This document shows positions 13,313 through 34,663 of a stretch of 54,871 bases of DNA, piece after piece (within the stretch, counting starts at the first letter, position 1; every line of letters begins with the position of its first letter). The translations under genes and the position numbers were made by a program. Source of the stretch: Aplysia californica (taxonomy: Eukaryota); the NCBI RefSeq assembly GCF_000002075.1, contig NW_004797825.1, positions 137,422 through 192,292 on the forward strand, written 5' to 3'. The notes under the pieces were generated by a model, which did not search any database, was not told the DNA's origin, and saw nothing but the letters and a program-made list of their open reading frames with translations.

Positions 13313-13377
13313 ATGGCGTCGTCCAATGTTCAGTACTACGAAAAACAAAAAGAATTGCAGGATACAATGTCGAGATG
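13313..13377 (+). CDS. KIZ: KIZ coding exon 1 ([21 protein letters not shown])
   Basis: Kozak context aaacATGG, donor TG|gtact, phase 2. Confidence 0.85.
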
Positions 13378-16300
13378 GTACTTATCAATATTATTCTCAC
13401 TTGATTATTGATTGATAACCGTACTCTTTATGTAGATCTAGATCTAGTTCTTTTGTTACTAGATCTAGATCTAGAATCTAGATCTACTTCCTTACATTTT
13501 TTTGTTACTAATCAAGATCTAGAATCATTTTTGTAACTTTAGCAGTGGGATGAACCCCTCTGCACCCCCCCTCCCCCCCATCTACACCCCCCCCTTCTAC
13601 CGGAGTAAATCTAGTAGTGGTCTGCTAATGATAATGTGAGGCCTACGGCCCTCCCTACAGTAGTACATATGGCCCTCTAAAGTATAGATTTCGATCTATC
13701 TAGCCTAATTAAAAGTATGCTCACGGCCTTGATAATCGCTCAGCTGGACATCGTCACTTTATCGATCGATATCTTGGCCAAGACAAAGATTGTGTATAAC
13801 AGGGAAGCTCACTGTCACTCCTCTATTTGAGCCAATTGAAAAAGTGTCCTCAAGATTCAGTGGTGCCCTATTTGAAAAAGACATGCCGTTAACATAGAAC
13901 GACGCATCTTTCTGATTAGCTGCTAATTTTATTAATGTGATGCCATCACTTCCTGGGATACCCACAGACTATTTTAAGAAGGCCATGGAGGTACCGCATG
14001 GAATGACGTGTTTTCGGTATGTAAAAACTTTTCGGAATTCCTAGATCTAGGCCTAGTACTAGTAGATCTACTTGGACATGATGGAAGAGCGCTTGGATCT
14101 AGATCGTTGATGCTCAGAACAGTAAGATTAAGAACGCTGATGCTTGAAATTGAAACACGGTAAATGCAAAGGCAATTCAATAAACCGCACGAAAACTTCA
14201 GTAAAGACGCTGGAGGATTAGATATAGATCTACCCCGCCTCTTGCATTCTTCATCACTAATTTACATTACAAAAAACAAACTACAAAGCAACAAATTCTA
14301 ATTTATGGGACTAACTGTTGGTCAGTCGGGATGAGGAGAAGAGAGAAAAAACCCCCACAAAAAAAACTTCCAGGACCGGGATCGAACCGCTCATAAAATA
14401 ATTGCAGACTTCAAACGCAGACGCGCTGTCCATTCGGCCATCAGAACTTCCAACAACGAGAGGTAAATTAGGCTTGATATACATAGACACTTCCATCTTT
14501 GGTGCCATGCAGTTGGCTATACTTAGATGTGGTCATGTGATCAGAGGGGTGTATCCTGGTCTGACGTCAAACAAGATGGGCGCCTTACCTAAAAATCGTT
14601 TGCGTCGTTCTCTGTTTAATCGCAGGTTCGAAAAAGTGTGGATATACCGATCAGAGTTGGGTACCCTACTTGTATGAAAAATAATAAAAAATCAAACTCA
14701 AACTGTGCTATTCCTATTCTTTTCCTGGAGAAATGAAAGAGAGCTTCAAAACACAGACTGCAGCATCATCTGAACCAATGCGTAGACTTCTGCGTACACA
14801 GGGTTCCTGCGGCCTCCTTGAATTCAAGGAATCCTTGAAAACTCCTTGAATTTGCATTCAAGGAAAAATCTCCTTGAAAACTCCTTGAATTTGAGGAACC
14901 TCCTTGAAAAGTCCTTGAATTTTGCCAGCTCGGGCAGAAGGTGACTGCCAGGGTGCGGGGCCCCCGGAAATTACCCCGAAATTTGAAAAAAAACGCCCGA
15001 GACCCTGGAATGCCCCTGGGAATTTGAAGAAGTCTCTGTAAATTGCCCCGGAAAAGACTCGGGAAAATATATAAATTTCTCTAATACTTAAAAACCGAAT
15101 CCAATGACGTCCTTGAGTTCATTTTTGCCAATCGCGATTGTGATATTCGGCTTTTCCCGGCCTGAGAGTATGTTACCCGAGCCAGGCGGCTATGGCAGCA
15201 AGCGGAAGTGTATGAGTGATAAGCCCCCTACTGAAGCTCGATCGGGAAAATCAAGATTTACTTTCGCTTTCGTTACCACCCAGAAATTTGCTGGTAGTAG
15301 TCTGATAACGCAACATTTGTGACATGCAGGTTGTGCATTGCAAACGCTGTGTCACTGTGAAAAAAATCATTTGTCCTGTGCTGTCACTTGTGGAAAAAAA
15401 GAAAGTTATACAAAAGCGTCTTGTTGGGCTTGCCATCGTGACCGGTCAGTGAACCTGTTCGTACGCATCATCGTGAGTATCGGCGTGAGGTCACCAAAGT
15501 TAATTCAAAGTCTGAACGCTACAAAGTATAGGACTCGGGAATGGGGGGGATTACTGATTTTAAAAAAATTAAGATGCTTGCGGGGGAGGGGGATGGGGTT
15601 GAAAGTAACACCGGATGACAAAAACTGAACTTGGAAGCAGATTTTACTTTTCCGAATTTTGACTACAACTAGATTCAGACCTAGAGCTCTCTGCAAACCG
15701 CGCGTTGGAGCAGGCTTTGTGTGGAATCGGGATCAGTGATACTCATACTCAAACCTTGTAAGCCATGTTTTATTTTAAACTAAAGGGTTCCCATTTCTTT
15801 TTGTATGATGAATTGTTTCTATATTTTAGCTTTCTGTTCAAGATTCCCGGATTTTCAGTGTCACTGCATCTTTCCCTCCCACAGTTCTTACATCTCTTTC
15901 CCTGAATAGTTCGACTTGAGCCATTCAAGTTGTTACTCTACTTTGAGTTTGTCTTTCACGTTTATTATGTATACTTTGACACCCATACTGGTTCTTGACA
16001 GTCGATATTCTGGCTCAAAACAAGATTCATTTTTATATTATAGTGTGAGTATGATGAGGGAAAAATATAAGTAAGAACAGACTGAAATACCTAAGTCACG
16101 CAATACCCCAGTGCCACACTGACATGTTGTTGACTAGATATAATGTGTACCTACATGCGCGTGCGTATGTGTGTATATTAGATACTGTTATATAACATGC
16201 CCCTGAAAAATGGATGAGACCCCTGGAAAATTGAGAAGCCGGGTTGGCAGTCACCCTGGAACAGAGTTTTTGTTGGTAAATAAAAACTATGATTTCTTTC

Positions 16301-19300
16301 GGATAAGTGTTGGCCTATCGGAAATAGGCTTTTGTCATGAATTTCTTGATCAAATCTTCTTTAATTTATAAAATTTCTCCTTGAAACCTCCTTGAAATCT
16401 CCTTGCTTTTGGTGGGAAGTTCATGACAGGAACCCTGCATACACTTTTTTTTTTTTGGCTGAGTGAACTATCTCGTTATGTATGATTCCAAGAGACGCTC
16501 TACAAGGTAACTTGCAAAGTCTTTGGTCACTATTTATAACTTTGACCTGTAATTTATTAATTCGTTTTCCATAGGAATGTTGAAATTTTCCATTGAAAAA
16601 GGTCAGCGTCTATACCTTTATATACGGCCTGCGCACTTCCCGATCGAAGTAGGTCAGCCCTATATAGGGCCTGCGCGCTTCCCGGGTAGCCCCAAAGATC
16701 GTTGCAGATAATCTTTTGTTGTCCAGCTCACGTCCTTTATATAGGGCCTGCGTGCTTCCCGGGTTAAGTTTGTTCACTTGAAGTGTCTGGTTTGATAGCT
16801 TATGTGCCGCCTACAAAGCCTAGATCTAGCTTATTATTATTATGTGAAGTGGAGGGCTGTACACATAGCCTCGATGCTATGCATACGGGAGCCGTACGCA
16901 TAGCCACTTCGAATAATAATAATACCTCAGCGGCTCAGCGCTTCAGTTGTTGAGATTGAGATCAGTTTGAGAGTGAAGAAGAGATTTCGACAACTTTGAC
17001 GGACAAGAGAGTCTTTGATACGATATAATCAATTGAATCTACTTAAGAAAATAATCATAAACAAAAACCAATCTTTATCCACCCCCCTCCCCCTCCTCCT
17101 TATAGCTAAATAAAATTATCAAACAACTATGTGCAAAAACAACTCAATATTTAAATTGGCTGGGTTTACCTGAAACTTCTGGTGTCACTAGTATCTTCTT
17201 TTCGGTTGGAACTTTAATTCTTGTGGGCTGAATGAATAGCCATTAAGCCTGTGATCTGTGATTGTTTTGGAATGAGGCTCTCATCAATTTTTGGGCATAT
17301 ATGGAGTTAGCAACATAATCTTATAGCCTGTTCATTTGTGTTGCTTTTGATGAAAAATAATGATCTATAGATCTTGAATAAAAGTTGAGATATTTGGGGT
17401 TGAAGGAGGGGGGGGGTTGTCTGGTGTAAACAGTAAAATTAGGGAAAAAATGTGGTTCCAAAGCTTGAGTGCCCTTGGTCACTGCAATTTAATTTTTTGG
17501 GGGGTACTTTTGATCAACTTTATCAATGAAATCCACACAGAAGTATCTTTTTTTATTGGGCTTAAAAGGTGCAGAGCCCACTAAAAATATTCTGTAAAAT
17601 ATGTTGATTTCTTTGATTTCATTAATTTGATAAGTGTTTGATTTCACCTTGATACCACAGAATTTTGCACTGTATTCTTTTTATTGTGAATATGTCATTC
17701 CTTGACTTTTTGAAGCATGCAACTCCCAAAATCAGTTAAGATACAAATGATGGATATTATCCTCAGTTCCAACCTTGATATTTTCCATAACTCATGACAT
17801 CTCTATTTATTTGGTTTTAGGCAAAAAAAAGAATGATTTTAAATTAAATTTTAAAAGTCAGAATGCAAGAATATTTGTAGATTGTTTATGAGTGGGATCT
17901 GTCTTGTGAGAATTCTTGTTCTTCACACTTAATGAGGTAACATATAAAGTAGTTCATCATTTTTGGCTGCCTTAAACGCATTCAGGACACATTTTTTCTG
18001 CTGTTGGAACTATTTGGACATGATTATTTTGTCACTGCGTGAATCAGTTTAAGAGTATGTAAATGAAATAGAGCAAAATCATCCCCAAACTGGAGGATTA
18101 TGTTCCAAGAAGCTTTCCTTTCATATTTTATATGCTCACTGATTTTACAAAAAGAAATAGAATAGAAATAACGAAATAAACAACCATGTTCAGATTGCCT
18201 GTAAATCAGTGATATGTCCAAAATGTGTTCCCTTGGAGTGACTGAATATCAACAATATGTCTGGGAAAAGTTAAGCTTGGTGTCCTAAGACCTACTGTAA
18301 TTTTGATGTGATATGAGTGAAGACAAAAAGGCTTTGTCTTTCGCTGTAATTCTTCTGATTCTTATATGACAGAAAGTTGACAGATTTGAACTTGAGCAAT
18401 CATTATCTGATGGAAAAAATATCCATTTAGTGTTTAATTGCAGTTATGAGTTTATTTGTTTTCTTTATTCTGCATTAAATTCGCCTTCAAAGAAGAAACT
18501 AGAGAATCGTTGTCTAAATTCGATTAAGTCAGAGTGCTTTCCTTTGATTTTTTTTTCAGTGAACAGCAGAGATTCAATCTTGAAAGAGAATTTAGGCTGT
18601 CTATGCAAGCTGATCAAACTTCGTAAGTATACTATTGTGAAAATTAGGGAAAATAACAAATTGAAAATATATTTGTCTGTTTGTTTTTTTGTGTATTTGT
18701 CCTTTGTATCCTCCTGCTCTGTGCCTTTGTGGGTCTATTTTTTTCTATTCTTTTGTTCTTTCCCATCTTGCTGCATCTTTTCATAATAGTCTCTTTATCT
18801 GTATGTATCTTTTGATTTAGACTCTTTTGATTCTTCACTTGTGAATGCTTGTGTATGTGTGAGTCTGTTCATGATTGTAAGTATGAGTATGTGCGTGTGC
18901 ACCAGTTAGTTTTTAACTTACATGTTTGTATACACAGTATGTGCTTGTATGTATATTGTGCTTTTGAGCATGCACATAAGCACANNNNNNNNNNNNNNNN
19001 NNNNNNNNNNNNNNNNNNNNNNNNNNNNNNNNNNNNNNNNNNNNNNNNNNNNNNNNNNNNNNNNNNNNNNNNNNNNNNNNNNNNNNNNNNNNNNNNNNNN
19101 NNNNNNNNNNNNNNNGTGTGTGTTTGTATCTGTGCATTGTGCAAGTAAGTGTGAATATGCCAATGTGTTTATAATGAGTGACTGCATTTAGTCATCATTT
19201 TTTTTTTGGGGGGGGGGGGTCAGTTTATCAGGTTTTTCAAAAATGTTTGTAAATTGTTCCTGTAACTATGTTATGACACATACTTTATCTTTAATGAGTT

Positions 19301-21257
19301 ATGTAACTGACTTTCATTAGCAAATTAGCTGCACATTACCATTTATTTTCATAGAATGAAAACAATATGCAGTTTTGGACTTTTCTGACAAAGGTGTATT
19401 TTTTCAGAAATTATTATAAATTTACTACTTTTTGTTTCTCAGTATAAATAAGAATATTGCTATAATTTAAATATTACTTTTGAAATTTTTAAATTTGGAA
19501 TTCATTTCTGTTGTAGCTGATCTTTAGACAACATTGATTTCATTTCATATTTATTTCAGAGCAAAAATGAAAGCAACAAGACTGCAAACGTACTGGAGAA
19601 AGATTTGTGATGATGAGAAAAGAGCAAAGCAACGAAATGAAATGTTAATACGAGAATTTGAGAGAATTGATGCCCATATGGCTGAAATGAATGCACGAAC
19701 ACAAAGGCTAGCTCTGATGAAGGTATACTTTTTTTTCAGTGGTTCTGATCATGTATTCTTTTTTTTAATGTGTATTTTGTGAACATGCTACTCGTGATTA
19801 CATGTGAAAGAAATCTGAATTTGGTCAACGATTATGTGTTTTGAGATTTTAAAGCATTGATTGCAAAGATATATGTGTGATTTGAATCTGTCAAAGTCCA
19901 GTCATTATGTTAACCCTTTGAACCCTAAAAACCAATATTTCGTCTGAGACAGGTCTCTGTGCCCCAAATGCCCGATACATTGGTATTCTATAATTACATT
20001 AAACCTGACAGTTCAAGCAGGCCCATAAATCAGGAACTGAGAGGAACTAGGACAATCAGGTTCGAGACCTTAGGATTCAAAGGGTTAAAACCATTTGTTT
20101 GAGCTCAGTGAATAGTGAATATAGAAAATGTTACATTGATAATATGTCATAGTTTATTATAGGCTACTTTAATTACATACTTTATGCTCCAAGGCCTGAT
20201 TTATGAGGACATTTTGCGTTCTCATTGTTTATAATATGAGTCATTCATATGCCAGACTCAAGTAAAATTCAAATGTTATACGCAAGATAGTCATCAAAAT
20301 GTACACAATTTTCCTATACAGAGACAGTATGAGGATTATGTGGCACGGACATATCCTGAATGGAATGAGCTCATGTACGGATCTCCTCAACAACAGCAGC
20401 AGCCCAATCCGGGGACTCAAGCACCAAGAGCAGAAGCTCAGCCACAGGTCATTGACAAAGCTAGCAGTTTTTGTTTGTTTTTACAGTAGGCCTACAATAA
20501 CATATGTGAAGGAAATCTCTGTCAGATTGTCGCAAGCAAAAATGATCAAATGTGTGTCAAACCCAGGGGCAGTGCCACTGACTGGAGTGTCTTTAGGCCA
20601 TTTCCAAAGGGGGGACATTTCTCATTCATGCACAGTAGAATTGTAAATGAGCTGATTCATCAATGTCACGCTCATAACTGTGCCTGATCTACAGCAAGGA
20701 ACTGTTGCTTTTTCTTTCCTAATCTTTATTATTGTCATTTTTACTCTACTTCTTTTGTATGTTTGTCACTCTCTTGTGACCCGCTATTTCCGGGGTGCCT
20801 TGATAGTCGAAGCAGACTTTGTGCTGTTGAAGCTAGAGAGGTGAGCAGAGTCAGCCTGGTTCCGTGTAAAGACTTCTCTGTTGACATCCACCCCTTGGCG
20901 CCCATATGACCTTATGCAGTTGCGAGTGCAGTAAAACCTCTACTAAATTTTTTTAAAAATTGTGTGTCGTCGGTGTAACTAAGTAGCTTTGTGTGTTGAT
21001 TTTTTCATGTCTGTTGATTTTTACCAACTTGGATTGGACATATACAGTGCGTACAATACCTTTATACCTGTATATATGTTTAGATAGCTTGTGTTTTGAA
21101 GCCATGATTTTCATCATTAATAGATAATAGTCTTTTTAAAAAAAAATTGTCAATATGTCTTTATCTTGGTGGCAATATTCAAATATGTAGGCAGCAGAAA
21201 ATTGTCAAATGGTTGCTGACTCATGTACCATGTCAAACACGCTTCTGTAATGTTGTC

Positions 21258-21294
<37 letters not shown>

Positions 21295-24200
21295 CAATAA
21301 ACTGTTTAACGTTGTTAACTTCACACAATTTTAAGAATGTGTAACTCAAATGCTAAACATCCAATAACTGACATTTTTACACATCTCACCAATTGAGCAC
21401 TTACGAGACATTTTAGCTCGAGCAATTCGTGCTAGACCACATCAGCTCCAGATCCCACTAAGTTAGAACAAGCTATAATTCAAGAGTGGAATAACATCCC
21501 TCAATAGACAATAACTCGACTCATTCAGTCCATGCATGTATGATGCAAAACTATGATCAACACCAGAAGTCATCGCACATGTTCATGAAGCTGTCACTTT
21601 GCACTTAAACCCCTGACAAATATGAGTTTAAAACTGAAGATTAGAAACAATCTTTTGTTTTTTCATTCAACATGTTTACCTTGTTGTAAAATTAATGCAC
21701 TGTCTTATCTGAAAATTTCAGACAGATTTGATCAGTATTAACCAAGATGCTGCCCTTAATATGAGGTGTGAAGTTAAAAATGTCGAAGAGTAGGCTATAT
21801 AAGCATTTATATCAAATATTAATTTCAGTCATTAGTGCTTCACTCATGACTTCTATTATTTCTTTTATATTTCTTTCACTTATCAGTCAAAGTTACAGCC
21901 CCAAAGTTCAACTTCTCCTCGAGTAAGCAAACAGCAACCGCCTACACAAGTACAAAAGCCAATAACTCCAAGGTCTCCTCAACGACAACAACAGCTAGCT
22001 ACGACACCCAGAGAGCAATTTCAGCGACAAGAAATTCAAGAAAGGCAAGAGCAAGTTGGTCAGTCAGGTAGTAGCAGTCATCCTGGGCCAAGGACACGAG
22101 CTGAGGAGAATGTACAGAGGTTGGGTAAGAGAATGCAGTTTTCACTTCAGATTAGTTCTCTCATTACTTAATTGAGTATAGGTATGTCACAATACAATAC
22201 AAGCCATTTAGATTAAATATAAACAAGTCGATGAACAGGCGGATAGTTGTTCCATCTGTTTTTGTAGTGTGTATTTGTTTTTATAATGATGTGACAAAAA
22301 TTGAATCTTTTATTATGTATGTTAAAATAGGAAAGGAAATTTGTACTCTAAAGAGTATTCTGTTGTTTTTTTAAACCCATGACACTGGCCTTTTTCTGAA
22401 TAGTTTTCTTTTCCATTTAGTTGTATACGTTGTTTTTTTTCTGTTCTTTGTCGTATTCAAGCAAAAATCACTGTAATGCAAACTTAAGCTGAAGGTGAGA
22501 TAAGTGAGACAAGGATTGTAAGTGAATATTATGTCGCTGTGTGAGTATTATTTGTTTTGTTTTTTCATGTTTAAAAAAGAATATAGTGATACAGCGGTTC
22601 ATTCTTTTTCAGGTGGACAGGCTGAACGAGGTCAAAGTGGAAATAGCTCTGTGCACCCGACGGTTAACCAAAATCAGAGTGTGAGCAGTGGTGCTGGGGT
22701 CTATCAGAATCTTCCCAGTGCTCGCAGCACCAAGGAAAATGATGGACTTCATGGTCAGCTGCAAGAATCATCTCTTGAGCAAGATGAGGAGATTTCCCAA
22801 CCAATCAGGAGTGTGGAAATACAGTCAAAGACATCGGGCAGGATGGTACAAGCCCCTCAATGTATGAACACACTGTTCTTGAAAATTCCATTTCCTTTTT
22901 TATTCTCATTTATTCCCAAACTTAAGATGAGTTAAAGAAAAAAACATTTCATATCTAGGGGTCTGATACTGAATGAAATTAAGTGCTTTCTGGACGTTTT
23001 GAAATGCGATGTGAAACTGGCAGTTATAGTGAGTAAGATAAACCTTATAATTCTGAATTTTTCATTTAGGTTGTTTGGCTCTCTGATGTTCAGGAACTAG
23101 TGTAACATTGTTAGGTAAAGAATAAAGTTGAAGCCTATTTATTTGAAAGTGAATATCTTCACTGCGTAAGTTTTTACTTGCTTGTAGTAGTGTGGGGTTT
23201 TGGATATTGTGTTACTAAAAAAATGCAGAGGCTTTCAGAAGATAACAGTATTTTCATTTGAGTTTATAGGTCTGCTTTATTGCAGGCTTACCCATAGATG
23301 CTATGTTTTCTGACTGAACTACCATTTCAGTGTGTGACAACTGACTGTTCTTGTGGTTATTTCACTGAGTTGAAGTCTTGTGTTCTCTTTGAGTCCTGCC
23401 TTAAGTCCGTTTCTTTTTCCCTCATCCTAGATAAACTAATCTGACTTTGTGTCGTCTTTTGGATTCTCATTCCTACATTCATGAAACACAGTCAGATTGT
23501 CTTCTCACTGATTTAAAAATGGACTTCACTTAAAACTCAAGTTACAAGGTGGCGACACCTGCATAGTTCCGGGATTTGGTCCATGTTATCACAGTAGAAA
23601 AGCTTCTTGCCCCAATGATATTAAAGAAGAGGTAGCGGGTTATAAAGATATTCTGTTTACACCAGCAGGGTATCCTGCCCCTCTCAACCCTTTCATGACA
23701 GCTCCCTCACAGAGCATTCAACGTCATGAGTCGAGTTGTTGTCCTCCCATACAATGTACATCCTAAAACCAGTTGTTTTGGGCAATTGTGTTGATCAATG
23801 ACATGCATTATGTGTGGTTTTATTACTGTACTGCAATGGCTTTGAATGTAATTTGACCTGAAAACTAATGAAAGATTCTAAATCTGCGATACCATTGATG
23901 TATGAATCACACAAATCTTCCATTTTGAAGGAGACTGCAAAATGACTGAAACTGCTCCATCCTGGCAAGCAAAAACTGGGCGCAGAAAAAGTTGATTAAA
24001 AAAAAGCTGGTCAACATGAAGGGATTAAGGAAGATTGTCTGATCAGATAACAATAGTGTATTGTCTCTATCCCTTCCTTCTTCCACCTATACTCAAGCCA
24101 GCAGAGAATATGTTGAGCCCCGTATGGAACATGTTATTTTTTTGTCTTCCTAGGCAGTGAACTCATACACAAATGTGAGGAGTGCTGACAAAATGAGTGA

Positions 24201-27200
24201 CTTTTCACAGTCTGTGAATGAAGATATTGGCCGAAAATGGATACCTGGGTCAATGCATTTTATACTAATCAGTTGTAAAAGCTCAACCTATAGATTTGAT
24301 GAAACTATGTCCATGAAGGCTAAAATTGGAAAAGTAACTCATTTTGTCAGGGCGCCTCTGAAAAAACCCTTTAACAACATGGTTAACAGTCCACTGAAAT
24401 TTGTTGTGATCTCAAAGATGCCATGGCACCTGGCACAGATGAAGATGATGATGAGGATGAGGAGACCAGTGACTTTGCTACCGAGAATGATCTTCCCATG
24501 GCTCAGTCTTTTGGGAACACCCAGGTCTTGGCCTCTGAGTTGAAAGGAAATTCTCAGAACCAGGAGAAGTCGAGAAACATTGGGTAAGGCTGTACACAAT
24601 GAGTGACTTTAGCTAAATACATACACCCTGCTTTTGTACTGTGTAGTGTTTGTCATTGAAAGCTCTCGTTACATAAGAAGCTTTACAATTGACTTCAAAT
24701 GCATTTTTTAAAAGCAAAGCACCACTTACCGCTTTTGCAATTATTTGGAAAGATCCCATTTTTTATCAAGATTGGGCTCCAGTATAATTAACCATAAGCC
24801 TGAAAAATTAACTGGCTCCTAGCTGCTAATCTTAAATATAATAGACACAGGGGTTTTTGCTACTGTTTTTTGGTTTGGAACTCTAAGAAATTAGCTTGTC
24901 TAAGAGCTCTGCTAGGTTGTAAAAGGTTGTAAAACCTCACTAGTTTGTCAAGGTTTATCCATAATCTCGTACAAGAATACAATGTGTNNNNNNNNNNNNN
25001 NNNNNNNNNNNNNNNNNNNNNNNNNNNNNNNNNNNNNNNNNNNNNNNNNNNNNNNNNNNNNNNNNNNNNNNNNNNNNNNNNNNNNNNNNNNNNNNNNNNN
25101 NNNNNNNNNNNNNNNNNNNNNNNNNNNNNNNNNNNNNNNNNNNNNNNNNNNNNNNNNNNNNNNNNNNNNNNNNNNNNNNNNNNNNNNNNNNNNNNNNNNN
25201 NNNNNNNNNNNNNNNNNNNNNNNNNNNNNNNNNNNNNNNNNNNNNNNNNNNNNNNNNNNNNNNNTCAGGCCAATAAAACCTGAACTCTCTATAGATGGAC
25301 TCATCCGACTTTTGAATCTGGTGGAAAGTGATATGCGGGAAGCCTTTTCACTTGAAGGATACTATCGTTCCTCCTGGCCCGACACTGCCAAGAAAAATGA
25401 CATCATCAGGTACAAAATCTTTATGGTCATACTGAGCTGAGATTTGTTTTGTGTTTGAATTGATGTTTTTCATCATTGGAAATGGTTTCTGGCACTGTTT
25501 CTTAGTTTTTGAAAAGTGTAAGACTTCCAAATGTGTTTGTTTTTAGGTGTGATTGAGTGTTGTGCTTGTTTTTGTGTGCTTTTGTACTTAAAAAGGTGAT
25601 TTTGTGTTTTGTTTTGTATTACTTTATTAGTAGGTTTCTTCAAGGCACTAGGAAGTCAGTGTTTGAAGCTTGGACATTCTTTTTTGACAATGGCCACCCA
25701 TATTTTAAACTTCCATAGTATGTGTGTGTGTGCACGTAAAATCTGTTTGGATGTACATTTTTAAGTAGTTGAGTGTGTGTGTTTGCTTTGAAATTTGTGT
25801 GTACATATGTGTGTATGTGCAGAGGTGAGGATATACAGTTGACATTGTCTAAGATGGCCACTTGTTGTAAAGGAAAAACGTGGCCATTATAGACAGGTGG
25901 ACGTCTTTCACGGTGTCATTTTAATGTAAAAACAACACAAAGGAGGTTATGGAAAGTGCCAGTTAGTACTGGTGATTGTCTTATACAGGTGGCCATTGGA
26001 GCAGGTTCAACTCTAGATGTATATTTTGCTTCTAAGAGACATGTTTTTTACACAGGCACTCAAACAGCGGAGATGACCTGAACCATGTCGATGCCAACCA
26101 GATCAGTATGGTCATCTTAGAGCAGATTACTTTGATTGTGCGCAGCCTAAGTGAGAAATGTGTCCTGCCAGAGAACTTGCTACAGGGCAATGTCAGCTCG
26201 CTCACTGCATCTAGGCTCAGGTAGTTCTACCTACACCTTTCGTGTTAAAACATTGTCAGGGTAGTAATTTTTGTGGAAAAACACAAAAAAATGTTGGTTT
26301 TTGTTGGTCAAGATTTTTAAAATTTGACGATTGACATTGAAAGTTTATAGTTTAATCAACCTTTTTAAAATGATTGTTTTGATTATGCTTTGTAAGTTGA
26401 TTGGAAAGGGGGTGGATGGGGTGGAGAGGAATTGAAACTATTTTGTAAAGTGACAATTTTGAAATGTCTTTTAGTCTTTTAAAAGATCCCTTTATTTGCA
26501 GAGTTGGAAAAAAAATAGACTCATGAAGTAAAGAAATGATGTTAAATTAGTTTTTGTGGTGTTAATGAGGATATATGTTTATGTTTTTAGCAACACAATT
26601 TTTAAAGCTCTTTGTTTTTTTATTTTATTGAAAAGAAATTGGAATGCATAAAAAAACATTTTTGGGATTTTTTTCTTTTCAGACAGCATTTATCACCGGA
26701 AGCCCAGATAATCTGGGATGCTCTTTTCCATCACTTCCAACAGTTGGTCAAACACCAAGCCATGGAGCCTCAGGAGTTGTCTGCCATTTTCACACCTTGT
26801 CTTGTTGGTGAAGGAGGATCTCAGGACAAGGTGGGGTTTGTTTTTAAATGGAGATTTTGAATCCTGCCTTCTTACTTAAGGACAAGGGAAAGCCCTCAAT
26901 GTAAAAAGAAGGGAGGTATTTGTTCTGAACTTAGAGGAAACTGTTTTTGTCAAATATTGTTCAAGGAATAGCAGTCTTCAATTAATTTTATCTCCTTTAA
27001 CATTTGAGTGATCTGCAAATCTCAGAAAATTATTTGAAAAAGTGATAAGGATTGTGTTTGCATGTAAGAATCTATGCTGAGCTAGAAAAGATGTAGATAT
27101 TAAGTATACAGATTATAATTTCAGTTAGAGTTTTACTGTACTTGCAACACAAATAGATGATTTAAGTGCCAAAGATTAGAGGTGTTTCTAGAGAGCAATA

Positions 27201-30200
27201 TACAATGAAAAGAAGGAGGAGAGATAAGGACGATAGATATCTGATGGGATACAAGGAGCAAGTCACACCAGAGCACCGGCCAACTACCCACAGATACAAA
27301 TTAAAATGGTTCATGTTGTGAATAGTTACTTAATTTTTGCCCATTTTATTTTGATATTTTCAGGGACACATGTTTATGGTACGGCTCTTAGAAGACTTTA
27401 GTATGAACAACCCTGAAATTCTACCCAAACAAAGTTTCAACACTATCAGCCCTGCTCAAACTCTGGAAGGATCTGGTAGTTTCATGGATGATGGGAAAGG
27501 TAACTGCCGTTCTTCTTTGCTGAGACAAATTCTCAAAAAACTTATATGGTTCACTTTTTGGACTCCTGAATTATTGATTTTAAATTCGCATTCAAGATTG
27601 CATTATAGTCATCAGCATGAAGGTTATTAATCTCCTGAGATCCTTTTGTGGCTCAAACATTTGATTCTGAAGGATTTATTTGTCATAAGCCTCTTTTTAT
27701 TTTGGCTACTCAGTGCTTCCCACCAGCACCTCTGTTGAATTGATTGCAAGCAAAAGATATTAGTTTGGTTATTAGAAGAACAAAACATTTTTACCAGCTG
27801 TTTTCTTTTTTCTGTTGAGATGTGGTATCCCACAGGTAGGGTTGAAGCAATTGACCTCTTAAATGTCTAAACTGTATTTAAAGGGATACAAACATGTACA
27901 ATAATTTAAAGTCTATTACTTATCTGCAGACATCTACTATTCTGAGCATCTCCTTCAATTTCTTAAACTTTGACAAGTTTCATTTGCTTTTCCTCAGTGC
28001 CGCCACTCAAATTTGGAAGTCTACTGGATAAACCCCTGAGTGATGATGAATCCAGCTATGTGAAATCTAGTCTACCTCGGGATCCAACACCTCTCAATGG
28101 TAACAATGGCCTAGTATACTTTAGTTGGGAGTTGAGATATACTTCATGGGAGATTGTTAATTTTTTTTTCTTTTTTCTTTTCAATTTCCGTTCTTGGTAT
28201 CAGTAGTTTTTGTGCAGTGTAATAATGATGTAATGTTAAGCAGTATTCACTGAAAGATATAAGTACTGTACTCTGATCATTTGTTAACAACCATATAGCA
28301 ATCTCTCTCTCTCTTGCCCTTTTTAATTTATGTCCCGTGCATCCTTTTCTAGCTGTTTCCATGATGTCTCCGCCTTTTCCATTTCTGCTTCTACCGCTTG
28401 CCTCCATGTCTTCTCTGGTCTTCCTTTCTTACGTTTTCCTTGTGGATTCCAAGTCAAAGCCTGTCTGATGATGCATGTCGGGGGTCTTCTCAGGGTATGC
28501 CCAATCCATTTCTATTTCTTCACCTGTATGTCTTCCTTTACTGGCCTTTTGCTTGTTCTTTCCCACACTTGAAGATTTGTTGCTTGATCGTACCACTTGA
28601 TCCCCACTATCCTTCTTAAGCATCCATTTATGAAGCTCTGCAGTTTCCTTGCTCATATAGCAATGGTTTACCTCAAAAAGTTGATTACATTTGTGACAAA
28701 ACAACTAATTATTACTCTCACGAATCTAGTTCTTTAATTCTTCTCATGTATGTATTGTAATAACAGCTTGCAAATGTTTTAAAATGTATTTCACACATCT
28801 TTTACTTTCATGAATCTAGCTCTTTAACTTGCCTCTTGTATGTGTTGTAATAACAGCTCACAAATATTTCTTAATGTATTGTCACACTTTACTGTAGAAA
28901 CAGAAGCCTACAAGAGCATGCTGTCTACGGGTGCCCGTTCTCAGATGAGGCGTCAGTCATCTGGTCCGGATGATACTGATGATGATGTGGAGAAGCAGAT
29001 TGCCACAGTTCTGACCCAGAAGCCTGGGTGTGTATGCATTGTCTCTCTGCTTGGTGCTCCCTGTTTTGAATTGAGCTGATGTGTTATTTACAACAAATTG
29101 GCACAAAAGTCACCTGCAGCAATTTAGAATAATAGAACAGTTGTTTTTTTAGCAGAGGTTTTACTGCGCTCGCAACTTGAGCGCCAAGAGGTGGATGTTA
29201 ACAGAGAAGCCCTCAGGGAATCAGGCTTACTCTGCTCACCTCTCTAGTTTCAGCAGCCCAAAGTCTACTTCGACTATCAAGGCACCCCGGAAATAGCAGG
29301 TCACAAGAGTGTGACAAATAGAAAAAGAAGTAGAGGAAAAAAGACGAGGTAAAGAAACTTCAGTCAGTGATGATGCCTTGCGGCTGCGTTTCGGGGGGGG
29401 GTTAATAGAAGAATATTAACATTGAGAAAAGCAGAAGGAAGGCATCATCATCATTGCCTTTCTCACCGTGCACCAGGGTATAGGCCACGAGCAAACACCT
29501 TCCACCTTTCTCTATCCTGGACTAGCCTTTTGATGTTATTCCATGTTAGAAGGAAGGCACTACATGAAAAACCCAACAGCTACCATATTCTTAGTGATAT
29601 AATTCTCCCTGATATCGTACATATACTGACTACATGATCCTTTCCACAATTTTTCTAAAGTATTGATGAGTGCAGAAAAAGTAAGTGAAAACCCCCCCTG
29701 GAATTTAGCTTGACTTTGTCTTGTGGGGTGGAGATTGGAAACACCAGAGTTCAAGTTTGATCTGAAAAGTTTTTATTGTTTGTAAACTGAAGGTAGTGAC
29801 ATTCTTACCAGTTCGAAGTAAAACAATTTTGTATTGAAAATGACTAGAACTAATATAAAGTTGAAATGTTATCTTTTAATTTTAGTAAGAGTTTTACAGC
29901 ACATGCAACACAATAAGGTCATATAAGTGCCGAAGATTAGAAGTGTTACAAGAGAGAAACAAACACAAAAACGAAGGAGAGAAAGGGACGAAAGATGTTT
30001 GATAGGAAAGAAGGAGCAAACCACTCCAGAGCATCTGCCAACTGCCTGCAAAATGTTATCTTTGAGAATAAATTCTCTTTGTGCTTATGTGATAATAATA
30101 GAATATTATTATGCTTGACATTTGCCGATAGAAGTATCTTCTAGGTTCTATAAACAAGCATAGTTTTTATTTTTATTACTTTTGAGCAGTATCAGATGGA

Positions 30201-33200
30201 GTCTCGACTGGTAAGTGCTAAATCAAGCGCAAAGATACAATTATTCCAAAATATTTTTAATACCATACTTGGAGTTGTTTTAGCCTTGCACTTCCGGTAA
30301 AATATATCCTTATATTTCACACGTGAAATATAGGCTAGCCCTAAGCTGACGATATCTCACACGTGAAATATAAAAATTTGCACAAATTACTGCGTGCAAT
30401 ATATTCGCCTTCTAGGCTAACCTTCTGTAGCTAAAGTAGATCTATAGACTTGAATCATAGTAGATATCTAGGCCTATTCCTAGACCAAGCAATGTTTTGG
30501 CAGCCTCTCCCCCCCCCCCCCCCTCGTAGAAAAACTTTGTTGCAAAACGTGCGCACCATAGGCACCTAAATGAAGTGCCAAACACCAGTCTCCCACAGTC
30601 CCTATAGTAGAGAGTAGGCACAGTTCTTTACGTTGGCCTTAATTTTGTTCCAAATTGAGCCAAATGGTGCGCACCATAGTAACACGCGATTACGTCAGAG
30701 TGCGGCAATGTATTTTAGTGCAATGCACAAGTCTATGCTAGCAAACGACCTAGATCTAGATCTAGCCTTTGATTTGTTTTGGTTGCAAAGTTTAAAATCA
30801 AAGTCATCTCTATTCTCACGACAACATGTCATTTGAATGCAGTTTCTTAATCTTTCAACTTTTGAATTGTACGTTTTCTGCTTGCTTTGCTTACGCTTAC
30901 GTCATTGTTGTTTTATTTGAGGTTTATTTTGCGGACGGAGAAATAGGCCTACGGATAGCACAATAAAGATCTAAATGAAAACAATCCAGGTTTTTCCAGT
31001 CCCCACTCTGACTCCCAAGGAGGTGCAATTTTTTTCGTCACATAGAACTAGATCTAAATCTAAAACGCTTGAATGGATCTTCTTGTCGAATTAATTGGTT
31101 GTTCATTTGAACTTTGTTGGTCCGGATCAAATTTGGCCAGCTGATGTCAGTATGGTTTAACAAATTTATTACAATCGTTAAGGTGGCAGACCATGATTCA
31201 CTCGTTGAAACTTGGGATTACAACTTGGCAATTTCACTCGTAGGATAAATCATGATCTACCACCACAACTCATGTAATAAATTCTTTATCATGTTTACTT
31301 TTTCTGTTATTTTACTTGTAGATCTGAGCTCTTAGTTTTAAACAAGAGATTTGTCTTATTGTATTTAAAGCTGTAAAGGCAATTATTAATGCATTATTTG
31401 TGCTTTTAATGTTTTTCAGACCTATGATCTCACCTAAAAGACGTGTAGAATTGGATGACCCATCAGAAACAAGCTCACAGACACTGCAGACGGCCTCTCA
31501 TGTCTACGTCCCAACTGCTATGGAGTCCAGGTGATATTACGTACATAATACCAGTTCCTGTTCTTTTGCCTTTCAGTATTTTTATTTCTTTCTTCTGCCT
31601 CCTTGTTAAGCATGCTTACCTTTTTTCTCATCCATCTTAATGCTGTACTCAGCCTTGTGGATCAGCGAATTGTTCAGTTTAGTATTCCCACAGAAAAGCA
31701 TTTTGTCTCTGCCACAACTTACATTGTATTGTTGATTACCTTCTCATTCTATAAACATATAAATACTTGTGGCCTTTCTCATGCACATTTATGTAAATAT
31801 TCCTTTTCTTCATCTCCTACACCCACATTATGTATTATATCTATGATTTTTCTCGAGCATATTTAGGTAGTTGTTACTTTCCTTTTCCTTCCCTTAGAAG
31901 TCTATGAGTACCTTGCTGTCTTTCTTATGGCTATTTGTAGGATTGTTACTTTTGTTCTCCTCCTTTAAACATCATAAACGCTTACCTGTGATCCTTCTCA
32001 TGCTTATTTTTTAAATTGTTAATTTCCTTCTCCTTCCATAAGAAGCCTCTGCATAACCTGTGGTCTCTCTTATGACTTGTTATAGAATTGTTACTTTTGT
32101 TCTTCTCCTTCAAAAACACACATACGCACGCACGCATTTACACACACTCCCATGTGTGCCTGCTTTTCTCATACTATTTATGGATTTACTACTTTCCTTC
32201 TACTCATTCTGGAAATGTATGTACCTGAGATCTTTTGCTTGCCTGTTAATTAAATTGTCACTTTCTTTCTCCTTTTTCTCCTCCTTCTCCTTGAAAAGTC
32301 ACTTATGACGCAGCCTTACACTGAGAAGTCAATATATTTTCTATAGGCAGTAAAAATTGTCTACAATGGCCTCCCATTATTGAGGAGAAAAAAGGTTGTC
32401 TTTGATAGAAGATGGACATCTTGGACAGTGTCATTCTAATATGAAAAAATACAAGGGGGAAAGTCGGAAGTGATTGTTTATACAAGTGAAAGTCTTGGAT
32501 AGGTGGCTGTAAGAGCAGGTTCAAATGTCTCAGTGCTATGTCTGCATAATTAACAGAAAATCCCCGAAAAGTGTGGTACCAGGTATTATTCTTTATGCAG
32601 TATCATTTAATTTACAAGAATGTAGAAAAAATATGCAGGTTTCATAAAACACATTTACTGTTTTTATATTGCTAAAGAATATTTTGTTGTCTCCTCAGGC
32701 CTATGGGAGGTAATACCAGCAGTGGACAGCCGAAATTTCAAGGTAAGAAAATTTTACATCATTAGCTCAAAAGTTATTGATGTATGGAGATTATTATTAT
32801 GAGAGAGATAAAATTCAACCTTTACATTTATAATAAATAGACAAAGATGGATTGATGTTATACTGCAGCTGCTTCGTATTAACTCCTTTGACCCTCAGGG
32901 TCAGTTCGTGCGTTACCGGGCAGTTTTGGATCCCCAGGAACAAAGAGTAGTGCTAGATTTAGTGGTCAGTTGTATATGATTAGACCCAGTTTGTAAATAC
33001 TACTTACTATTTCTAAAAAGAAAAGATTTCTTTGTACAGGAAAAATATTGCTGAATGTGAATCTGGAATTAGTTTTATGTAGTTCATCTTATAGAAGCAG
33101 TGTGCCAAATACATCCCATGATGAACAGCTTTCGTCATCATGGTCCTCGTGCTTTGCAAGGCATGTCGCACCGTGTATGTCATAGCAGCATCTTGCCTCC

Positions 33201-34663
33201 TTTTCTGTATAACAAGAAGTGACAAATGGCAAATGTCATGAAGGGGTTAAATAGATCAGTTGTCCTCATTTATCTTGCTCAATTCATGTAGCCAATTTTA
33301 TTTTCAAAGATGTCAGAGGGGGCTGTCGCGGCCTAGAGGTTACGGTGTTCGCCTTTCATTCAAAGGTCCTGCTTTCGAATCCGGGTAGCGATGGAAATGT
33401 TTTTCTCTCTAAAATTGTCTCCTTTCACTTCCTTTTTTGCTCTCTAGCAATGTTCTGTCATCTGCTTCCGTCTTCACTTTCTTCCCCCACCCTCCTTTTC
33501 CCCCTTCTCTGGGCTTCTGACTCTTTCTGCAGCCTCTCAACTTCAACTGCTACTCCTTGGCTTCTTCTAACTGCTGTCTTTCAGCCATGCCCCTGATCTT
33601 CTGGTAGGAAAGATCTACACCTAGCTTTCTATCTGGAGGTCCCATGAGCAAGTTGCTCATGTTAAAGATCCCTTGCTGGTCTAAAATCGATAAGAGTAGG
33701 CCTCGGCCACCACCTGCGCAAAATTAAAAATTTCCTACCAACTGAAAATGTTTGGTGTGTTCTGCGCGCTCATATGACCTTATGCAGTTGTGAGCGCCGT
33801 AAAACACTTACCAAAAAAAAAATGTCAGAGTGGTGGTCATTCTGCTGGTACAGAACGTAAAAAATGCAAATGCTGTGAACTTGATGAAATATTTTTTAAA
33901 GAACATTGTTGATACGATGTGTCCTGATGGTTGGAGGTTCTGAGCCCTCTGCTATTTCACTTTCTCGTCTCTCTTTTTCCCAGCATTGAATGATATACTT
34001 AACATGTCAATGTACCTCTCTTATCCTCCATTGACTCAGATTTTGGTAATTTTTCTCTTTATAGAAGTTTTACGTCCCCATAAACATCGACACTTTTAGA
34101 TCATTTAGGAGGCAGGCTGTTCCTGCTTGCCAGGACCTACTCAGGCTAAGAGGGATACAATGTCCCAGAAGGAAGACAGAGATACTTGATAGAAATGATC
34201 CCCACATTAAAATCGAACCCTTGTTTTTTGCATGTAGTGGCAAAGTACAAAACCACAACACCACTGATGCCGATATGACTCAAAGACTCCCCTAATAATA
34301 AATGAATGAAATGAAATTTGTAATCAGATACTTTAGTTCTTCAGTGCTAGAACATTTTAAAATGACAAGAAGTCTGGATTTTTTTTTTTAGGGGAAAAAA
34401 AAAGCAAAGTTTTCTGACATGGTTAAAACTTTTAGACCCAGGAGTGTCTACAAGTAAGTATGAATTCAAACAAACATACTATCAAACAAACAATTGGGCG
34501 TGCCTCTTTGATTCAGTATTCCTACCACTACAACATTCTGCTGATGTTCTTTTCTCAAACAGGGGTGAAGATCAGCTCAGATTTGGATACTGATACTGAG
34601 GTGGATGCTGGCATTTTCGGAAGCAGCAAGAGGCCTGAAGATGACTTTGACTTTTATGACTGA
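13313..34663 (+). CDS. KIZ: Centrosomal protein kizuna (PLK1 substrate), 16 coding exons, about 715 aa
   Basis: Exons 13313-13377, 18560-18622, 19560-19722, 20322-20447, 21887-22124, 22613-22861, 24418-24583, 25269-25409, 26056-26220, 26683-26830, 27364-27499, 27998-28099, 28898-29027, 31420-31530, 32699-32742 and 34563-34663 join in frame (2148 nt including TGA). The N-terminal coiled coil ([49 protein letters not shown]), [12 protein letters not shown] and the C-terminus ([15 protein letters not shown]) match recalled kizuna motifs (DYYERLGQLQ, EKKRLDLEKK, ICESEKKAHTRNQEYLKRFERVQAH, DDFYD*). Confidence 0.9.
14368..14447 (-). mobile_element. tRNA-derived SINE head or tRNA-like pseudogene
   Basis: Minus strand has A box TGGCCGAATGG and B box GGTTCGATCCC; no proper acceptor stem. 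Confidence 0.6.
14799..16437. mobile_element. hAT-like non-autonomous element with a 6-bp TSD
   Basis: Perfect 11-bp TIR CAGGGTTCCTG/CAGGAACCCTG, subterminal (c)tccttgaa arrays at both ends, flanks cgtaca/cataca. Confidence 0.8.
14937..16258. mobile_element. Nested related element inside 14799-16437
   Basis: Inverted GGTGACTGCCA/TGGCAGTCACC(CTG) with its own subterminal cc(t/c)ggaaa repeats. Confidence 0.65.
16617..16767. repeat. Three direct copies of tata(c/g)ggcctgcg.(a/g)cttcccg ending GGG|TTAA: orphan piggyBac-like terminus
   Basis: Copies at about 16619, 16661 and 16737; no partner end found. Confidence 0.55.
18560..18622 (+). CDS. KIZ: KIZ exon 2 ([21 protein letters not shown])
   Basis: Poly-T cag acceptor, gtaag donor. 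Confidence 0.88.
18985..19115. other. Assembly gap
   Basis: N run. Confidence 1.
19560..19722 (+). CDS. KIZ: KIZ exon 3 ([39 protein letters not shown]...)
   Basis: Within ORF 19534..19782; conserved coiled coil. Confidence 0.92.
19914..20084. mobile_element. piggyBac-like MITE
   Basis: TTAA|CCCTTTGAACCCTAA ... TTAGGATTCAAAGGG|TTAA. Confidence 0.85.
20322..20447 (+). CDS. KIZ: KIZ exon 4 ([20 protein letters not shown]...)
   Basis: cag acceptor, gtcat donor, phase 0 to 0. Confidence 0.85.
20735..20950 (+). mobile_element. SINE-like repeat (3' part), inverted copy at 29145-29345
   Basis: About 200 bp reverse-complement homology (cttgtgacc.gctatttccggggtgccttgatagtcgaag...); 3' tail shared with the SINE at 33320. 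Confidence 0.75.
21260..21291. repeat. (TA)n microsatellite
   Basis: Seen directly. Confidence 0.95.
21383..21588 (+). pseudogene. Tc1/mariner transposase C-terminal relic
   Basis: [16 protein letters not shown]...[30 protein letters not shown] matches the Tc1 pattern PIEHLW...EW..IP..I..LI.SM..RC; lies next to a (TA)n run at 21260-21291. Confidence 0.85.
21887..22124 (+). CDS. KIZ: KIZ exon 5 (Q/P/S-rich low complexity)
   Basis: Open 238-nt exon, cag acceptor, gtaag donor. Confidence 0.82.
22613..22861 (+). CDS. KIZ: KIZ exon 6
   Basis: Within ORF 22522..22935; cag acceptor, gtatg donor. Confidence 0.82.
23689..24024. mobile_element. Degenerate piggyBac-like MITE
   Basis: tcaaCCCTTTCATG ... 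CATGAAGGGAttaa ends. Confidence 0.5.
24418..24583 (+). CDS. KIZ: KIZ exon 7 (acidic: [19 protein letters not shown]...)
   Basis: Phase-compatible open exon with gtaag donor; the aag acceptor is weak, so the 5' boundary is less certain. Confidence 0.72.
24988..25264. other. Assembly gap
   Basis: N run. Confidence 1.
25269..25409 (+). CDS. KIZ: KIZ exon 8 ([35 protein letters not shown]...)
   Basis: tcag acceptor immediately after the gap, gtac donor. Confidence 0.85.
25835..26014. mobile_element. Degenerate Tigger/pogo-like MITE related to 35898-36715
   Basis: tacagttgac...tggccac...caggtggcc...caggttcaactcta. Confidence 0.55.
26056..26220 (+). CDS. KIZ: KIZ exon 9 ([41 protein letters not shown]...)
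   Basis: cag acceptor, gtagt donor. Confidence 0.88.
26683..26830 (+). CDS. KIZ: KIZ exon 10 ([41 protein letters not shown]...)
   Basis: Within ORF 26612..26860. Confidence 0.88.
27125..27295 (+). repeat. Dispersed repeat, copy 1 of 3 (also 29870-30050 and 45720-45880)
   Basis: Shared aagtgccaaagattaga...gatagat.t.tgat.gga..aaggagcaa..cac.ccagag. Confidence 0.7.
27364..27499 (+). CDS. KIZ: KIZ exon 11
   Basis: cag acceptor, gtaac donor. Confidence 0.85.
27998..28099 (+). CDS. KIZ: KIZ exon 12 ([19 protein letters not shown]...)
   Basis: cag acceptor, gtaac donor. Confidence 0.85.
28320..28650 (-). mobile_element. RTE-clade LINE 3' ORF fragment
   Basis: Minus strand reads [44 protein letters not shown]...[11 protein letters not shown], the typical RTE C-terminus. 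Confidence 0.88.
28722..28890. repeat. About 90-bp degenerate tandem duplication just upstream of KIZ exon 13
   Basis: gaatctag.tctttaa.t...tgtatgt.ttgtaataacagct at about 28722 and 28812. Confidence 0.75.
28898..29027 (+). CDS. KIZ: KIZ exon 13 ([12 protein letters not shown]...[12 protein letters not shown]...)
   Basis: tag acceptor, GG|gtgtgt donor. Confidence 0.85.
29145..29345 (-). mobile_element. SINE-like repeat, inverted copy of 20735-20950
   Basis: Direct reverse-complement comparison. Confidence 0.75.
29870..30050 (+). repeat. Dispersed repeat, copy 2 of 3
   Basis: Homologous to 27125-27295 and 45720-45880. Confidence 0.7.
30240..31282. mobile_element. Non-autonomous element with palindromic ends, Crypton-like (tentative)
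   Basis: Left: two tat.tcacacgtgaaatata palindromes. Right: nested inverted repeats aatttattaca/tgtaataaatt and ggtggcagaccatgatt/aatcatgatctaccacc. Confidence 0.45.
31420..31530 (+). CDS. KIZ: KIZ exon 14 ([20 protein letters not shown]...)
   Basis: cag acceptor, gtgat donor, phase 2 to 2. Confidence 0.8.
31600..32290. repeat. Degenerate pyrimidine-rich minisatellite, about 70-bp unit
   Basis: Recurring ttgtta(c/a)ttt..ttctcc...tacctg...ttct(c/t)atg. Confidence 0.6.
32290..32528. mobile_element. Degenerate Tigger/pogo-like MITE
   Basis: Right end aggtggctgtaagagcaggttcaaatgt resembles the ends of 25835-26014 and 35898-36715. Confidence 0.45.
32699..32742 (+). CDS. KIZ: KIZ exon 15 ([14 protein letters not shown])
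   Basis: cag acceptor, gtaag donor, phase 2 to 1. Confidence 0.78.
32883..33246. mobile_element. Degenerate piggyBac-like MITE
   Basis: TTAA|CTCCTTTGAC ... GTCATGAAGGGG|TTAA. Confidence 0.5.
33320..33821 (+). mobile_element. Full-length tRNA-derived SINE with Meta/MESC-like core and TSD
   Basis: A box GGCCTAGAGG, B box TTTCGAATCC, core gaggtcccatg...catgttaaagatccc, A-rich tail, TSD atgtcagag on both sides. Confidence 0.85.
34563..34663 (+). CDS. KIZ: KIZ last coding exon ([32 protein letters not shown])
   Basis: Conserved DDF.FYD C-terminus, TGA at 34661-34663. Confidence 0.9.

Follow-up and report, generated by a model that had tools for sequence, protein, structure and literature searches.

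Background

Kizuna (KIZ) has been described as a PLK1 substrate located at the centrosome and the distal appendages, and its gene as a retinal dystrophy gene (PMC11984956, PMC7618310). It is probably recruited through SCLT1 (PMC11984956), cilium formation is unimpaired in the KIZ knockout, and no biochemical activity is assigned to the protein in either of these two papers (PMC11984956, PMC7618310). No link of kizuna, KIZ or PLK1S1 to RhoGAP, to GTPase-activating function or to Rho GTPases was found in the literature searched, and kizuna is not mentioned in an AlphaFold survey of centrosomal proteins. The present work concerns the kizuna gene of Aplysia californica, located at 13313..34645 on the forward strand of a 54,871-nucleotide stretch of contig NW_004797825.1 (the whole stretch analysed, hereafter the window; all the features of the gene given below lie on the same strand), and in particular a domain encoded by its exons 8–11 which, judging from predicted structures, very probably has the RhoGAP/BH fold.

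The gene encodes P0027, a protein of 715 aa listed in the database as "centrosomal protein kizuna [Aplysia californica]" and bearing the PF28416 Kizuna_N domain. A tblastn search of the window with P0027 gave 16 coding-exon matches, mostly with 100% identity and with lower values where the local match overruns an exon border, which establishes that the gene is kizuna, as the preliminary description of this DNA, made from the sequence alone, had suggested. The protein possesses the N-terminal Kizuna_N coiled coil, is orthologous to annotated kizuna proteins and is collinear with those of 20+ molluscs. When exon 10 was used by itself as the query of a full HMMER search, 20 proteins were returned, the long ones of which are named centrosomal protein kizuna and come from gastropods and bivalves.

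Predicted structure of the kizuna domain

The AlphaFold2 model of P0027 was built from an alignment of 29 kizuna homologues, namely 26 named molluscs and three ENA/Logan sequences. Residues 6–107 form one long helix with a predicted local distance difference test (pLDDT) score of about 95, residues 123–357 are disordered, and a compact all-helical domain is located at residues of about 359–523, after which mostly low-confidence sequence follows. The block means of pLDDT are 85–96 over residues 361–520 and the scores are below 50 over residues 158–357 and 528–583. The ordered block between low-complexity regions proposed in the preliminary description is thus recognizable in the model, although its end had been placed slightly too early, as the domain reaches exon 11 (up to about 27408).

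The helices of the domain are found at residues 365–381, 396–408, 417–433, 443–446, 455–460, 464–482, 488–499 and 506–523. Exon 8 (25269..25409) codes for the start of the domain, which consists of helix A (365–381) and the finger loop with the EGYYR motif, exon 9 (26056..26220) for helices 396–408 and 417–433 and two short helices, and exon 10 (26683..26830) for helices 464–482 and 488–499 and for the motif M-E-P[11 protein letters not shown]. The last helix (506–523) starts at the end of exon 10, and most of it is encoded by 27364..27408 in exon 11 (27364–27499). Exons 8, 9 and 10 are all bordered by an AG acceptor and a GT donor, and the frame is preserved across them by the split codons AG|G and AG|A; together with the translations, these borders bear out the exon limits, the peptides and the position of the arginine codon (CGT, 25366..25368) originally reported.

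The preliminary description had recommended a Foldseek search with an AlphaFold model. When compared with the PDB in this way, the model gave a RhoGAP or BH domain as every top match listed, with E-values from 3e-4 to 5e-3, a probability of 1.00 and template modelling (TM) scores by target of 0.39–0.62, mostly 0.5–0.6. The top matches include ARHGAP12, Myo9b, RICS, p50RhoGAP, ARHGAP15, p85 BH, OCRL, p190, DLC1, chimaerin and GRAF. Re-alignment with VIA placed 44 entries at Z 10.6–15.3, all of them from the RhoGAP/BH superfamily and with 143–166 residues aligned to residues 359–522 of the model, while the best score outside these entries was Z 6.4; the structural matches extend to model residues 520–523. 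An exhaustive VIA scan of 48,161 PDB representative chains, which is independent of Foldseek, resulted in 21 chains with Z of at least 8, all of the RhoGAP/BH/OCRL type (Z 10.3–14.7), the runners-up being coiled coils with Z 7.0 which match the N-terminal helix only.

A second predictor leads to the same fold. The ESM Atlas model of residues 355–520 shows TM scores of 0.72–0.74 to the clusters of ARHGAP8, FAM13A, ARHGAP39 and others, and RhoGAP clusters also rank first by the language-model features (0.90 and 0.89). A TM score of 0.95 over all 166 residues was obtained with a chordate "centrosomal protein kizuna" cluster, for which Kizuna_N is the sole Pfam label (Pfam 38.1). With both predictors and all three methods of comparison in agreement, we regard the RhoGAP fold as very probable, and in the predicted models this all-helical RhoGAP/BH fold spans the whole domain. 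The divergent GTPase-activating protein (GAP) or pseudo-GAP fold first suggested from sequence motifs was recovered by every strong structural match. The domain is a constant part of mollusc kizuna and, going by structure predictions, of the chordate protein as well.

It might be argued that the domain is an unrelated helical bundle and that the RhoGAP match reflects either a common helical arrangement or predictor bias, since a chance Z of about 13–14 is attainable by helical models and the sequence E-values are marginal. Against this, the 21 matches at Z of at least 8 are all members of a single superfamily and extend over the entire domain, followed by a drop to 7.0, the two independent predictors are concordant, and the motifs in the sequence follow the order of the fold and are located in the right elements, which makes such a coincidence very improbable. 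The resemblance to RhoGAPs is beyond chance, its basis being mainly structural with weak but collinear support from the sequence.

Sequence similarity to RhoGAP proteins

The exons of the RhoGAP-fold region were searched one by one, and the full-length work was done with the database protein P0027. Exon 10 alone matched the Pfam RhoGAP family PF00620 with an E-value of 0.0019 and 18.5 bits over profile positions 102–144 of 148, and this was the sole Pfam family reported for the exon. Full-length P0027 matched the same family with an E-value of 0.0074 and 16.6 bits, residues 430–500 being aligned to profile positions 71–144. Single exon peptides compared with PDB sequences by phmmer gave nothing relevant.

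The targets for hhalign were profiles made from A. californica's own RhoGAP paralogues, exon by exon. The profile of the RhoGAP C-terminal half (14 exons) was matched by the kizuna domain with an E-value of 1.7e-4 and a probability of 49%, residues 457–500 of kizuna being paired with the LP..N...L..L..V....NKM...NLA.VFGP.L region. For the N-terminal half the E-values were 0.11–0.22, and the best local alignment pairs E-G-Y-Y-R with the finger motif [VI]-G-[VIL]-[YF]-R; a permissive extension continues collinearly, at low confidence, to the LLK..FLR.LPEPL helix. Small RhoGAP exon alignments gave no significant match (E-values 0.22 and 0.044), and a gain was seen only for the C-terminal half at 14 sequences. 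Due to the weak sequence signal the kizuna domain has so far been left unlabelled, and yet it would be apparent in any fold search on the public predicted KIZ models.

Catalytic positions and their conservation

The CGT codon mentioned above codes for Arg390 of EGYYR, the candidate arginine finger, which is located within the loop of residues 382–395 after helix A (pLDDT about 88) and is aligned by hhalign with the finger arginine of the genome's own RhoGAP exons. The profile alignment is thus in accordance with the earlier recognition of EGYYR as an arginine-finger motif. As to the conservation of this arginine in other molluscs, which had been raised at the same time, it is high and not complete: arginine is present in 26 of the 29 aligned sequences, among them P0051, P0052 and P0055, the homologues that have diverged furthest, and is replaced with lysine in Patella, glycine in Babylonia and tyrosine in Batillaria, three orthologues which are otherwise well conserved. 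Babylonia and Batillaria are caenogastropods, whereas the arginine is retained in Pomacea. Invariant residues in the alignment are Tyr389, Asn407 (codon 26063–26065, exon 9), Leu425, Trp470 and His476.

In the complex of p50RhoGAP with RhoA, Asn194 of the GAP is bonded to Tyr34 of RhoA, and Asp65 in switch II of RhoA encounters a helix of the GAP that carries positive charge (PMC12240320). At the position of Asn194, in the N-L-A-x-V-F-G-P helix of p50RhoGAP, kizuna has Glu490 (codon 26774–26776, exon 10) in all 29 sequences, so the RhoGAP asparagine is missing. The position of Lys122 is occupied, at low confidence, by Glu426 (codon 26120–26122, exon 9; 25/29) and that of Arg126 by Arg433 (codon 26141–26143, exon 9; 21/29), so that the basic pair of catalytic RhoGAPs would be incomplete. 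Both substitutions, of the conserved lysine and of the conserved asparagine, had already been noticed in the preliminary description. By alignment, kizuna appears to keep two arginines, whereas two positions in contact with the GTPase have their charge reversed. Y389, R390, E426, Q427 and E490, which are the polar residues conserved best, would map to the GTPase-facing elements of RhoGAPs. The finger arginine has been given up in three lineages without loss of the domain, which weighs against an indispensable catalytic finger and not against the fold.

Possible function of the domain

Due to the acidic contact positions (Glu426 and Glu490) and the loss of the finger arginine in three lineages, a pseudo-GAP-like binding module is considered the most likely function, and it is unlikely that kizuna is a canonical RhoGAP. 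The whole reading, that of a diverged RhoGAP/BH domain serving as a pseudo-GAP-like recognition module for a predicted partner, stands in our opinion just on the probable side. The domain (residues of about 359–523) lies between the N-terminal Kizuna_N coiled coil and the disordered C-terminal half with its short conserved motifs. Its GTPase-facing surface, comprising the finger loop, helix 417–433 and helix 488–499, would serve to bind its partner at the distal appendage of the centriole, predicted to be most probably a small GTPase recognized in a non-canonical manner, and the domain would not be a canonical Rho/Rac/Cdc42 GAP. Both the use of this surface for binding and the lack of catalysis are what we infer. 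The structural matches with the lowest root-mean-square deviation (rmsd) include the OCRL RhoGAP-like domain (2.4–2.5 Å) and the p85 BH domain (2.9 Å). Both of these domains are inactive.

A Rab has, for its part, been claimed as a GAP target of the p85 BH domain. If kizuna were an active GAP, Arg390 would supply the arginine finger to a small GTPase, possibly of the Rho family or a Rab, at the centrosome or cilium base, and the acidic substitutions would set the specificity. The alignment of Arg390 with the finger arginine and its retention in 26 of 29 sequences including the most divergent ones, the confidently modelled finger loop, the arginine at the Arg126 position in 21/29 and the fact that the structural match with the highest Z, Myo9b, is an active GAP are all consistent with this; nevertheless, we regard it as unlikely, as the arginine has been exchanged in the well conserved orthologues of Babylonia, Batillaria and Patella and as glutamate is invariant at Asn194 and predominant at Lys122, both of which are GTPase contacts in canonical complexes (PMC12240320).

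It is likewise improbable, to about the same extent, that the RhoGAP-like fold makes no GTPase contact at all and serves as a docking or stability module for SCLT1 or for the kizuna C-terminal motifs, comparable to OCRL with its F&H peptides. Kizuna protein is destabilized in SCLT1 knockout cells and its recruitment by SCLT1 is thought likely (PMC11984956), OCRL, a low-rmsd match, binds peptides according to the title of PDB entry 3qis, and the C-terminal half of kizuna contains near-invariant short motifs, but the most conserved polar residues map, by alignment, to the surface elements which face the GTPase in RhoGAPs.

Several observations weigh against the pseudo-GAP-like reading or the evidence on which it is built. 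Neither exon 10 (18.5 bits) nor P0027 (16.6 bits) reaches the PF00620 gathering threshold of 24.5 bits. P0027 itself is the one sequence out of the 29 kizuna homologues to match PF00620 at E ≤ 1, with no match in the other 28. When the PDB sequences were searched with a profile built from 10 kizuna proteins of molluscs, no RhoGAP was retrieved, just a poly-Q artefact, and the kizuna locus is absent, at E ≤ 0.1, from the 56 RhoGAP exon matches of a whole-genome six-frame PF00620 scan. The fold evidence comes from predicted models rather than from a solved structure, and the alignment behind them is shallow (29 sequences, mostly from molluscs). The residue equivalences follow from motif and profile alignment and the order of secondary-structure elements and not from an inspected three-dimensional superposition, with the pairing of Lys122 with Glu426 and of Arg126 with Arg433 depending on the low-confidence extended hhalign alignment and on the comparison of AVILK with MVILE. 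Finally, a genuine GAP whose substrate contacts are unusual would be equally compatible with the near-conservation of the finger arginine and of Arg433.

With the pseudo-GAP-like module as the preferred reading, the RhoGAP-fold domain connects kizuna, a protein of unexplained mechanism, in a testable way with small-GTPase signalling and lets one ask which GTPase or other partner it binds and whether Arg390 or Glu490 matter. [quoted passage not shown] A bolder proposal sees in kizuna a functioning GAP, or an effector specific to the GTP state, for a small GTPase of the centriole distal appendage, with Arg390 and the invariant Glu490 representing a new acidic recognition mode in the RhoGAP fold. 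It is doubtful, albeit a shade less so than the two alternatives above; if true, it would assign the retinal-dystrophy gene KIZ a defined biochemical role at the base of the cilium. A diverged RhoGAP branch whose contact residues have reversed their charge would bear on the evolution of pseudo-GAPs as well.

Transcripts and other features of the locus

Exons 8, 9, 10 and 11 are joined at the predicted GT..AG borders in transcript contigs of 2,703 and 1,239 nt, which originate from two runs of two studies and show 0 mismatches. The finding of the spliced contigs in two studies establishes that the spliced kizuna message is real. Raw poly-A RNA reads from two further runs showed no depth on exons 8–11. 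The A. californica genome searched comprises 927,310,431 bases in 4,332 contigs, and the kizuna locus is present in it as a single copy, with the exception of an intronic repeat. A run of N at 24988–25264 (277 bases) stops two bases short of the AG at which exon 8 is accepted and makes the end of intron 7 unreadable.

The repeat is located in intron 8 (about 25831–26026) and belongs to a dispersed element about 190 bp long, of which more than 40 copies, at 69–87% identity, are spread over many contigs; its 3′ part (about 25949–26024) has very high word depth in the transcript assemblies. Intron 10 contains a short element (about 27165–27316) with extreme depth in all four runs, including the raw poly-A RNA reads, on both strands and with many loose ends at 27207–27209 and 27238, which looks like a very abundant transcribed repeat.

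The N-terminal long helix of kizuna (exons 1–4, 13313–20447; residues 6–120 of P0027) has a sub-threshold match to the CEP15-like family PF15134, found in 20/29 homologues with a best E-value of 1.4e-5. As CEP15, like KIZ, has recently been assigned to the distal appendages, the coiled coils of the two proteins may be related. The disordered C-terminal half (27976–28098 and downstream exons; residues 554–715) carries the near-invariant mollusc motifs [34 protein letters not shown] and the terminal DFDFY, which are likely docking motifs.

The divergent homologue P0051 (857 aa) is called as one uninterrupted 2.6-kb gene (L006 101–2674; ENA ERZ25767047, a 6.1 Mb contig), in contrast to the 16 coding-exon matches of the A. 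californica gene. Single-exon small GTPase genes of Rap-like, atypical Rho-like, Arl-like and divergent Rab-like types were found as well; the search for such genes brought up an intronless gene coding for a 287-aa Rho-family-like GTPase with a long serine-rich insert (L040 1429–2292; G000:C10).

Comparison with known RhoGAP-fold proteins

The protein considered here belongs to the same family as the kizuna of the literature, with the Kizuna_N N-terminus and mollusc orthologues named kizuna, and no catalytic or GTPase domain is described for the latter in the literature searched.

Compared to canonical RhoGAPs (PF00620; p50RhoGAP/ARHGAP1, Myo9b, MgcRacGAP and the chimaerins), the kizuna domain has the same helical fold, with about 150–166 aligned residues and Z 12–15. 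The order of the elements, the arginine after helix A in a motif of the G-x-x-R type, the arginine at the Arg126 position and the [ILV]-A-x-[VI]-F-x-P-x-L helix are common to both. The kizuna domain is, however, about 25 residues shorter, shares 8–19% identity with them and remains below the Pfam threshold, it has glutamates where canonical RhoGAPs have Lys122 and Asn194, and its finger arginine is variable among the orthologues.

The RhoGAP-like domains of OCRL/INPP5B (ASH-RhoGAP-like) and the BH domains of p85alpha/beta are among the matches with the lowest rmsd, 2.4–2.9 Å over 148–153 residues with Z 14.1–14.5, and in all of these proteins, as in kizuna, a compact RhoGAP-like domain is set in a non-GAP protein. 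OCRL lacks the finger arginine. Kizuna, unlike OCRL, mostly retains it, the flanking domains are unrelated, and the kizuna sequence is detectably no closer to OCRL or p85 than to active GAPs; a role of OCRL in the endocytic pathway is indicated by the title of PDB entry 2qv2. The kizuna domain is best filed as a highly diverged addition to this known fold family, located within a known protein.

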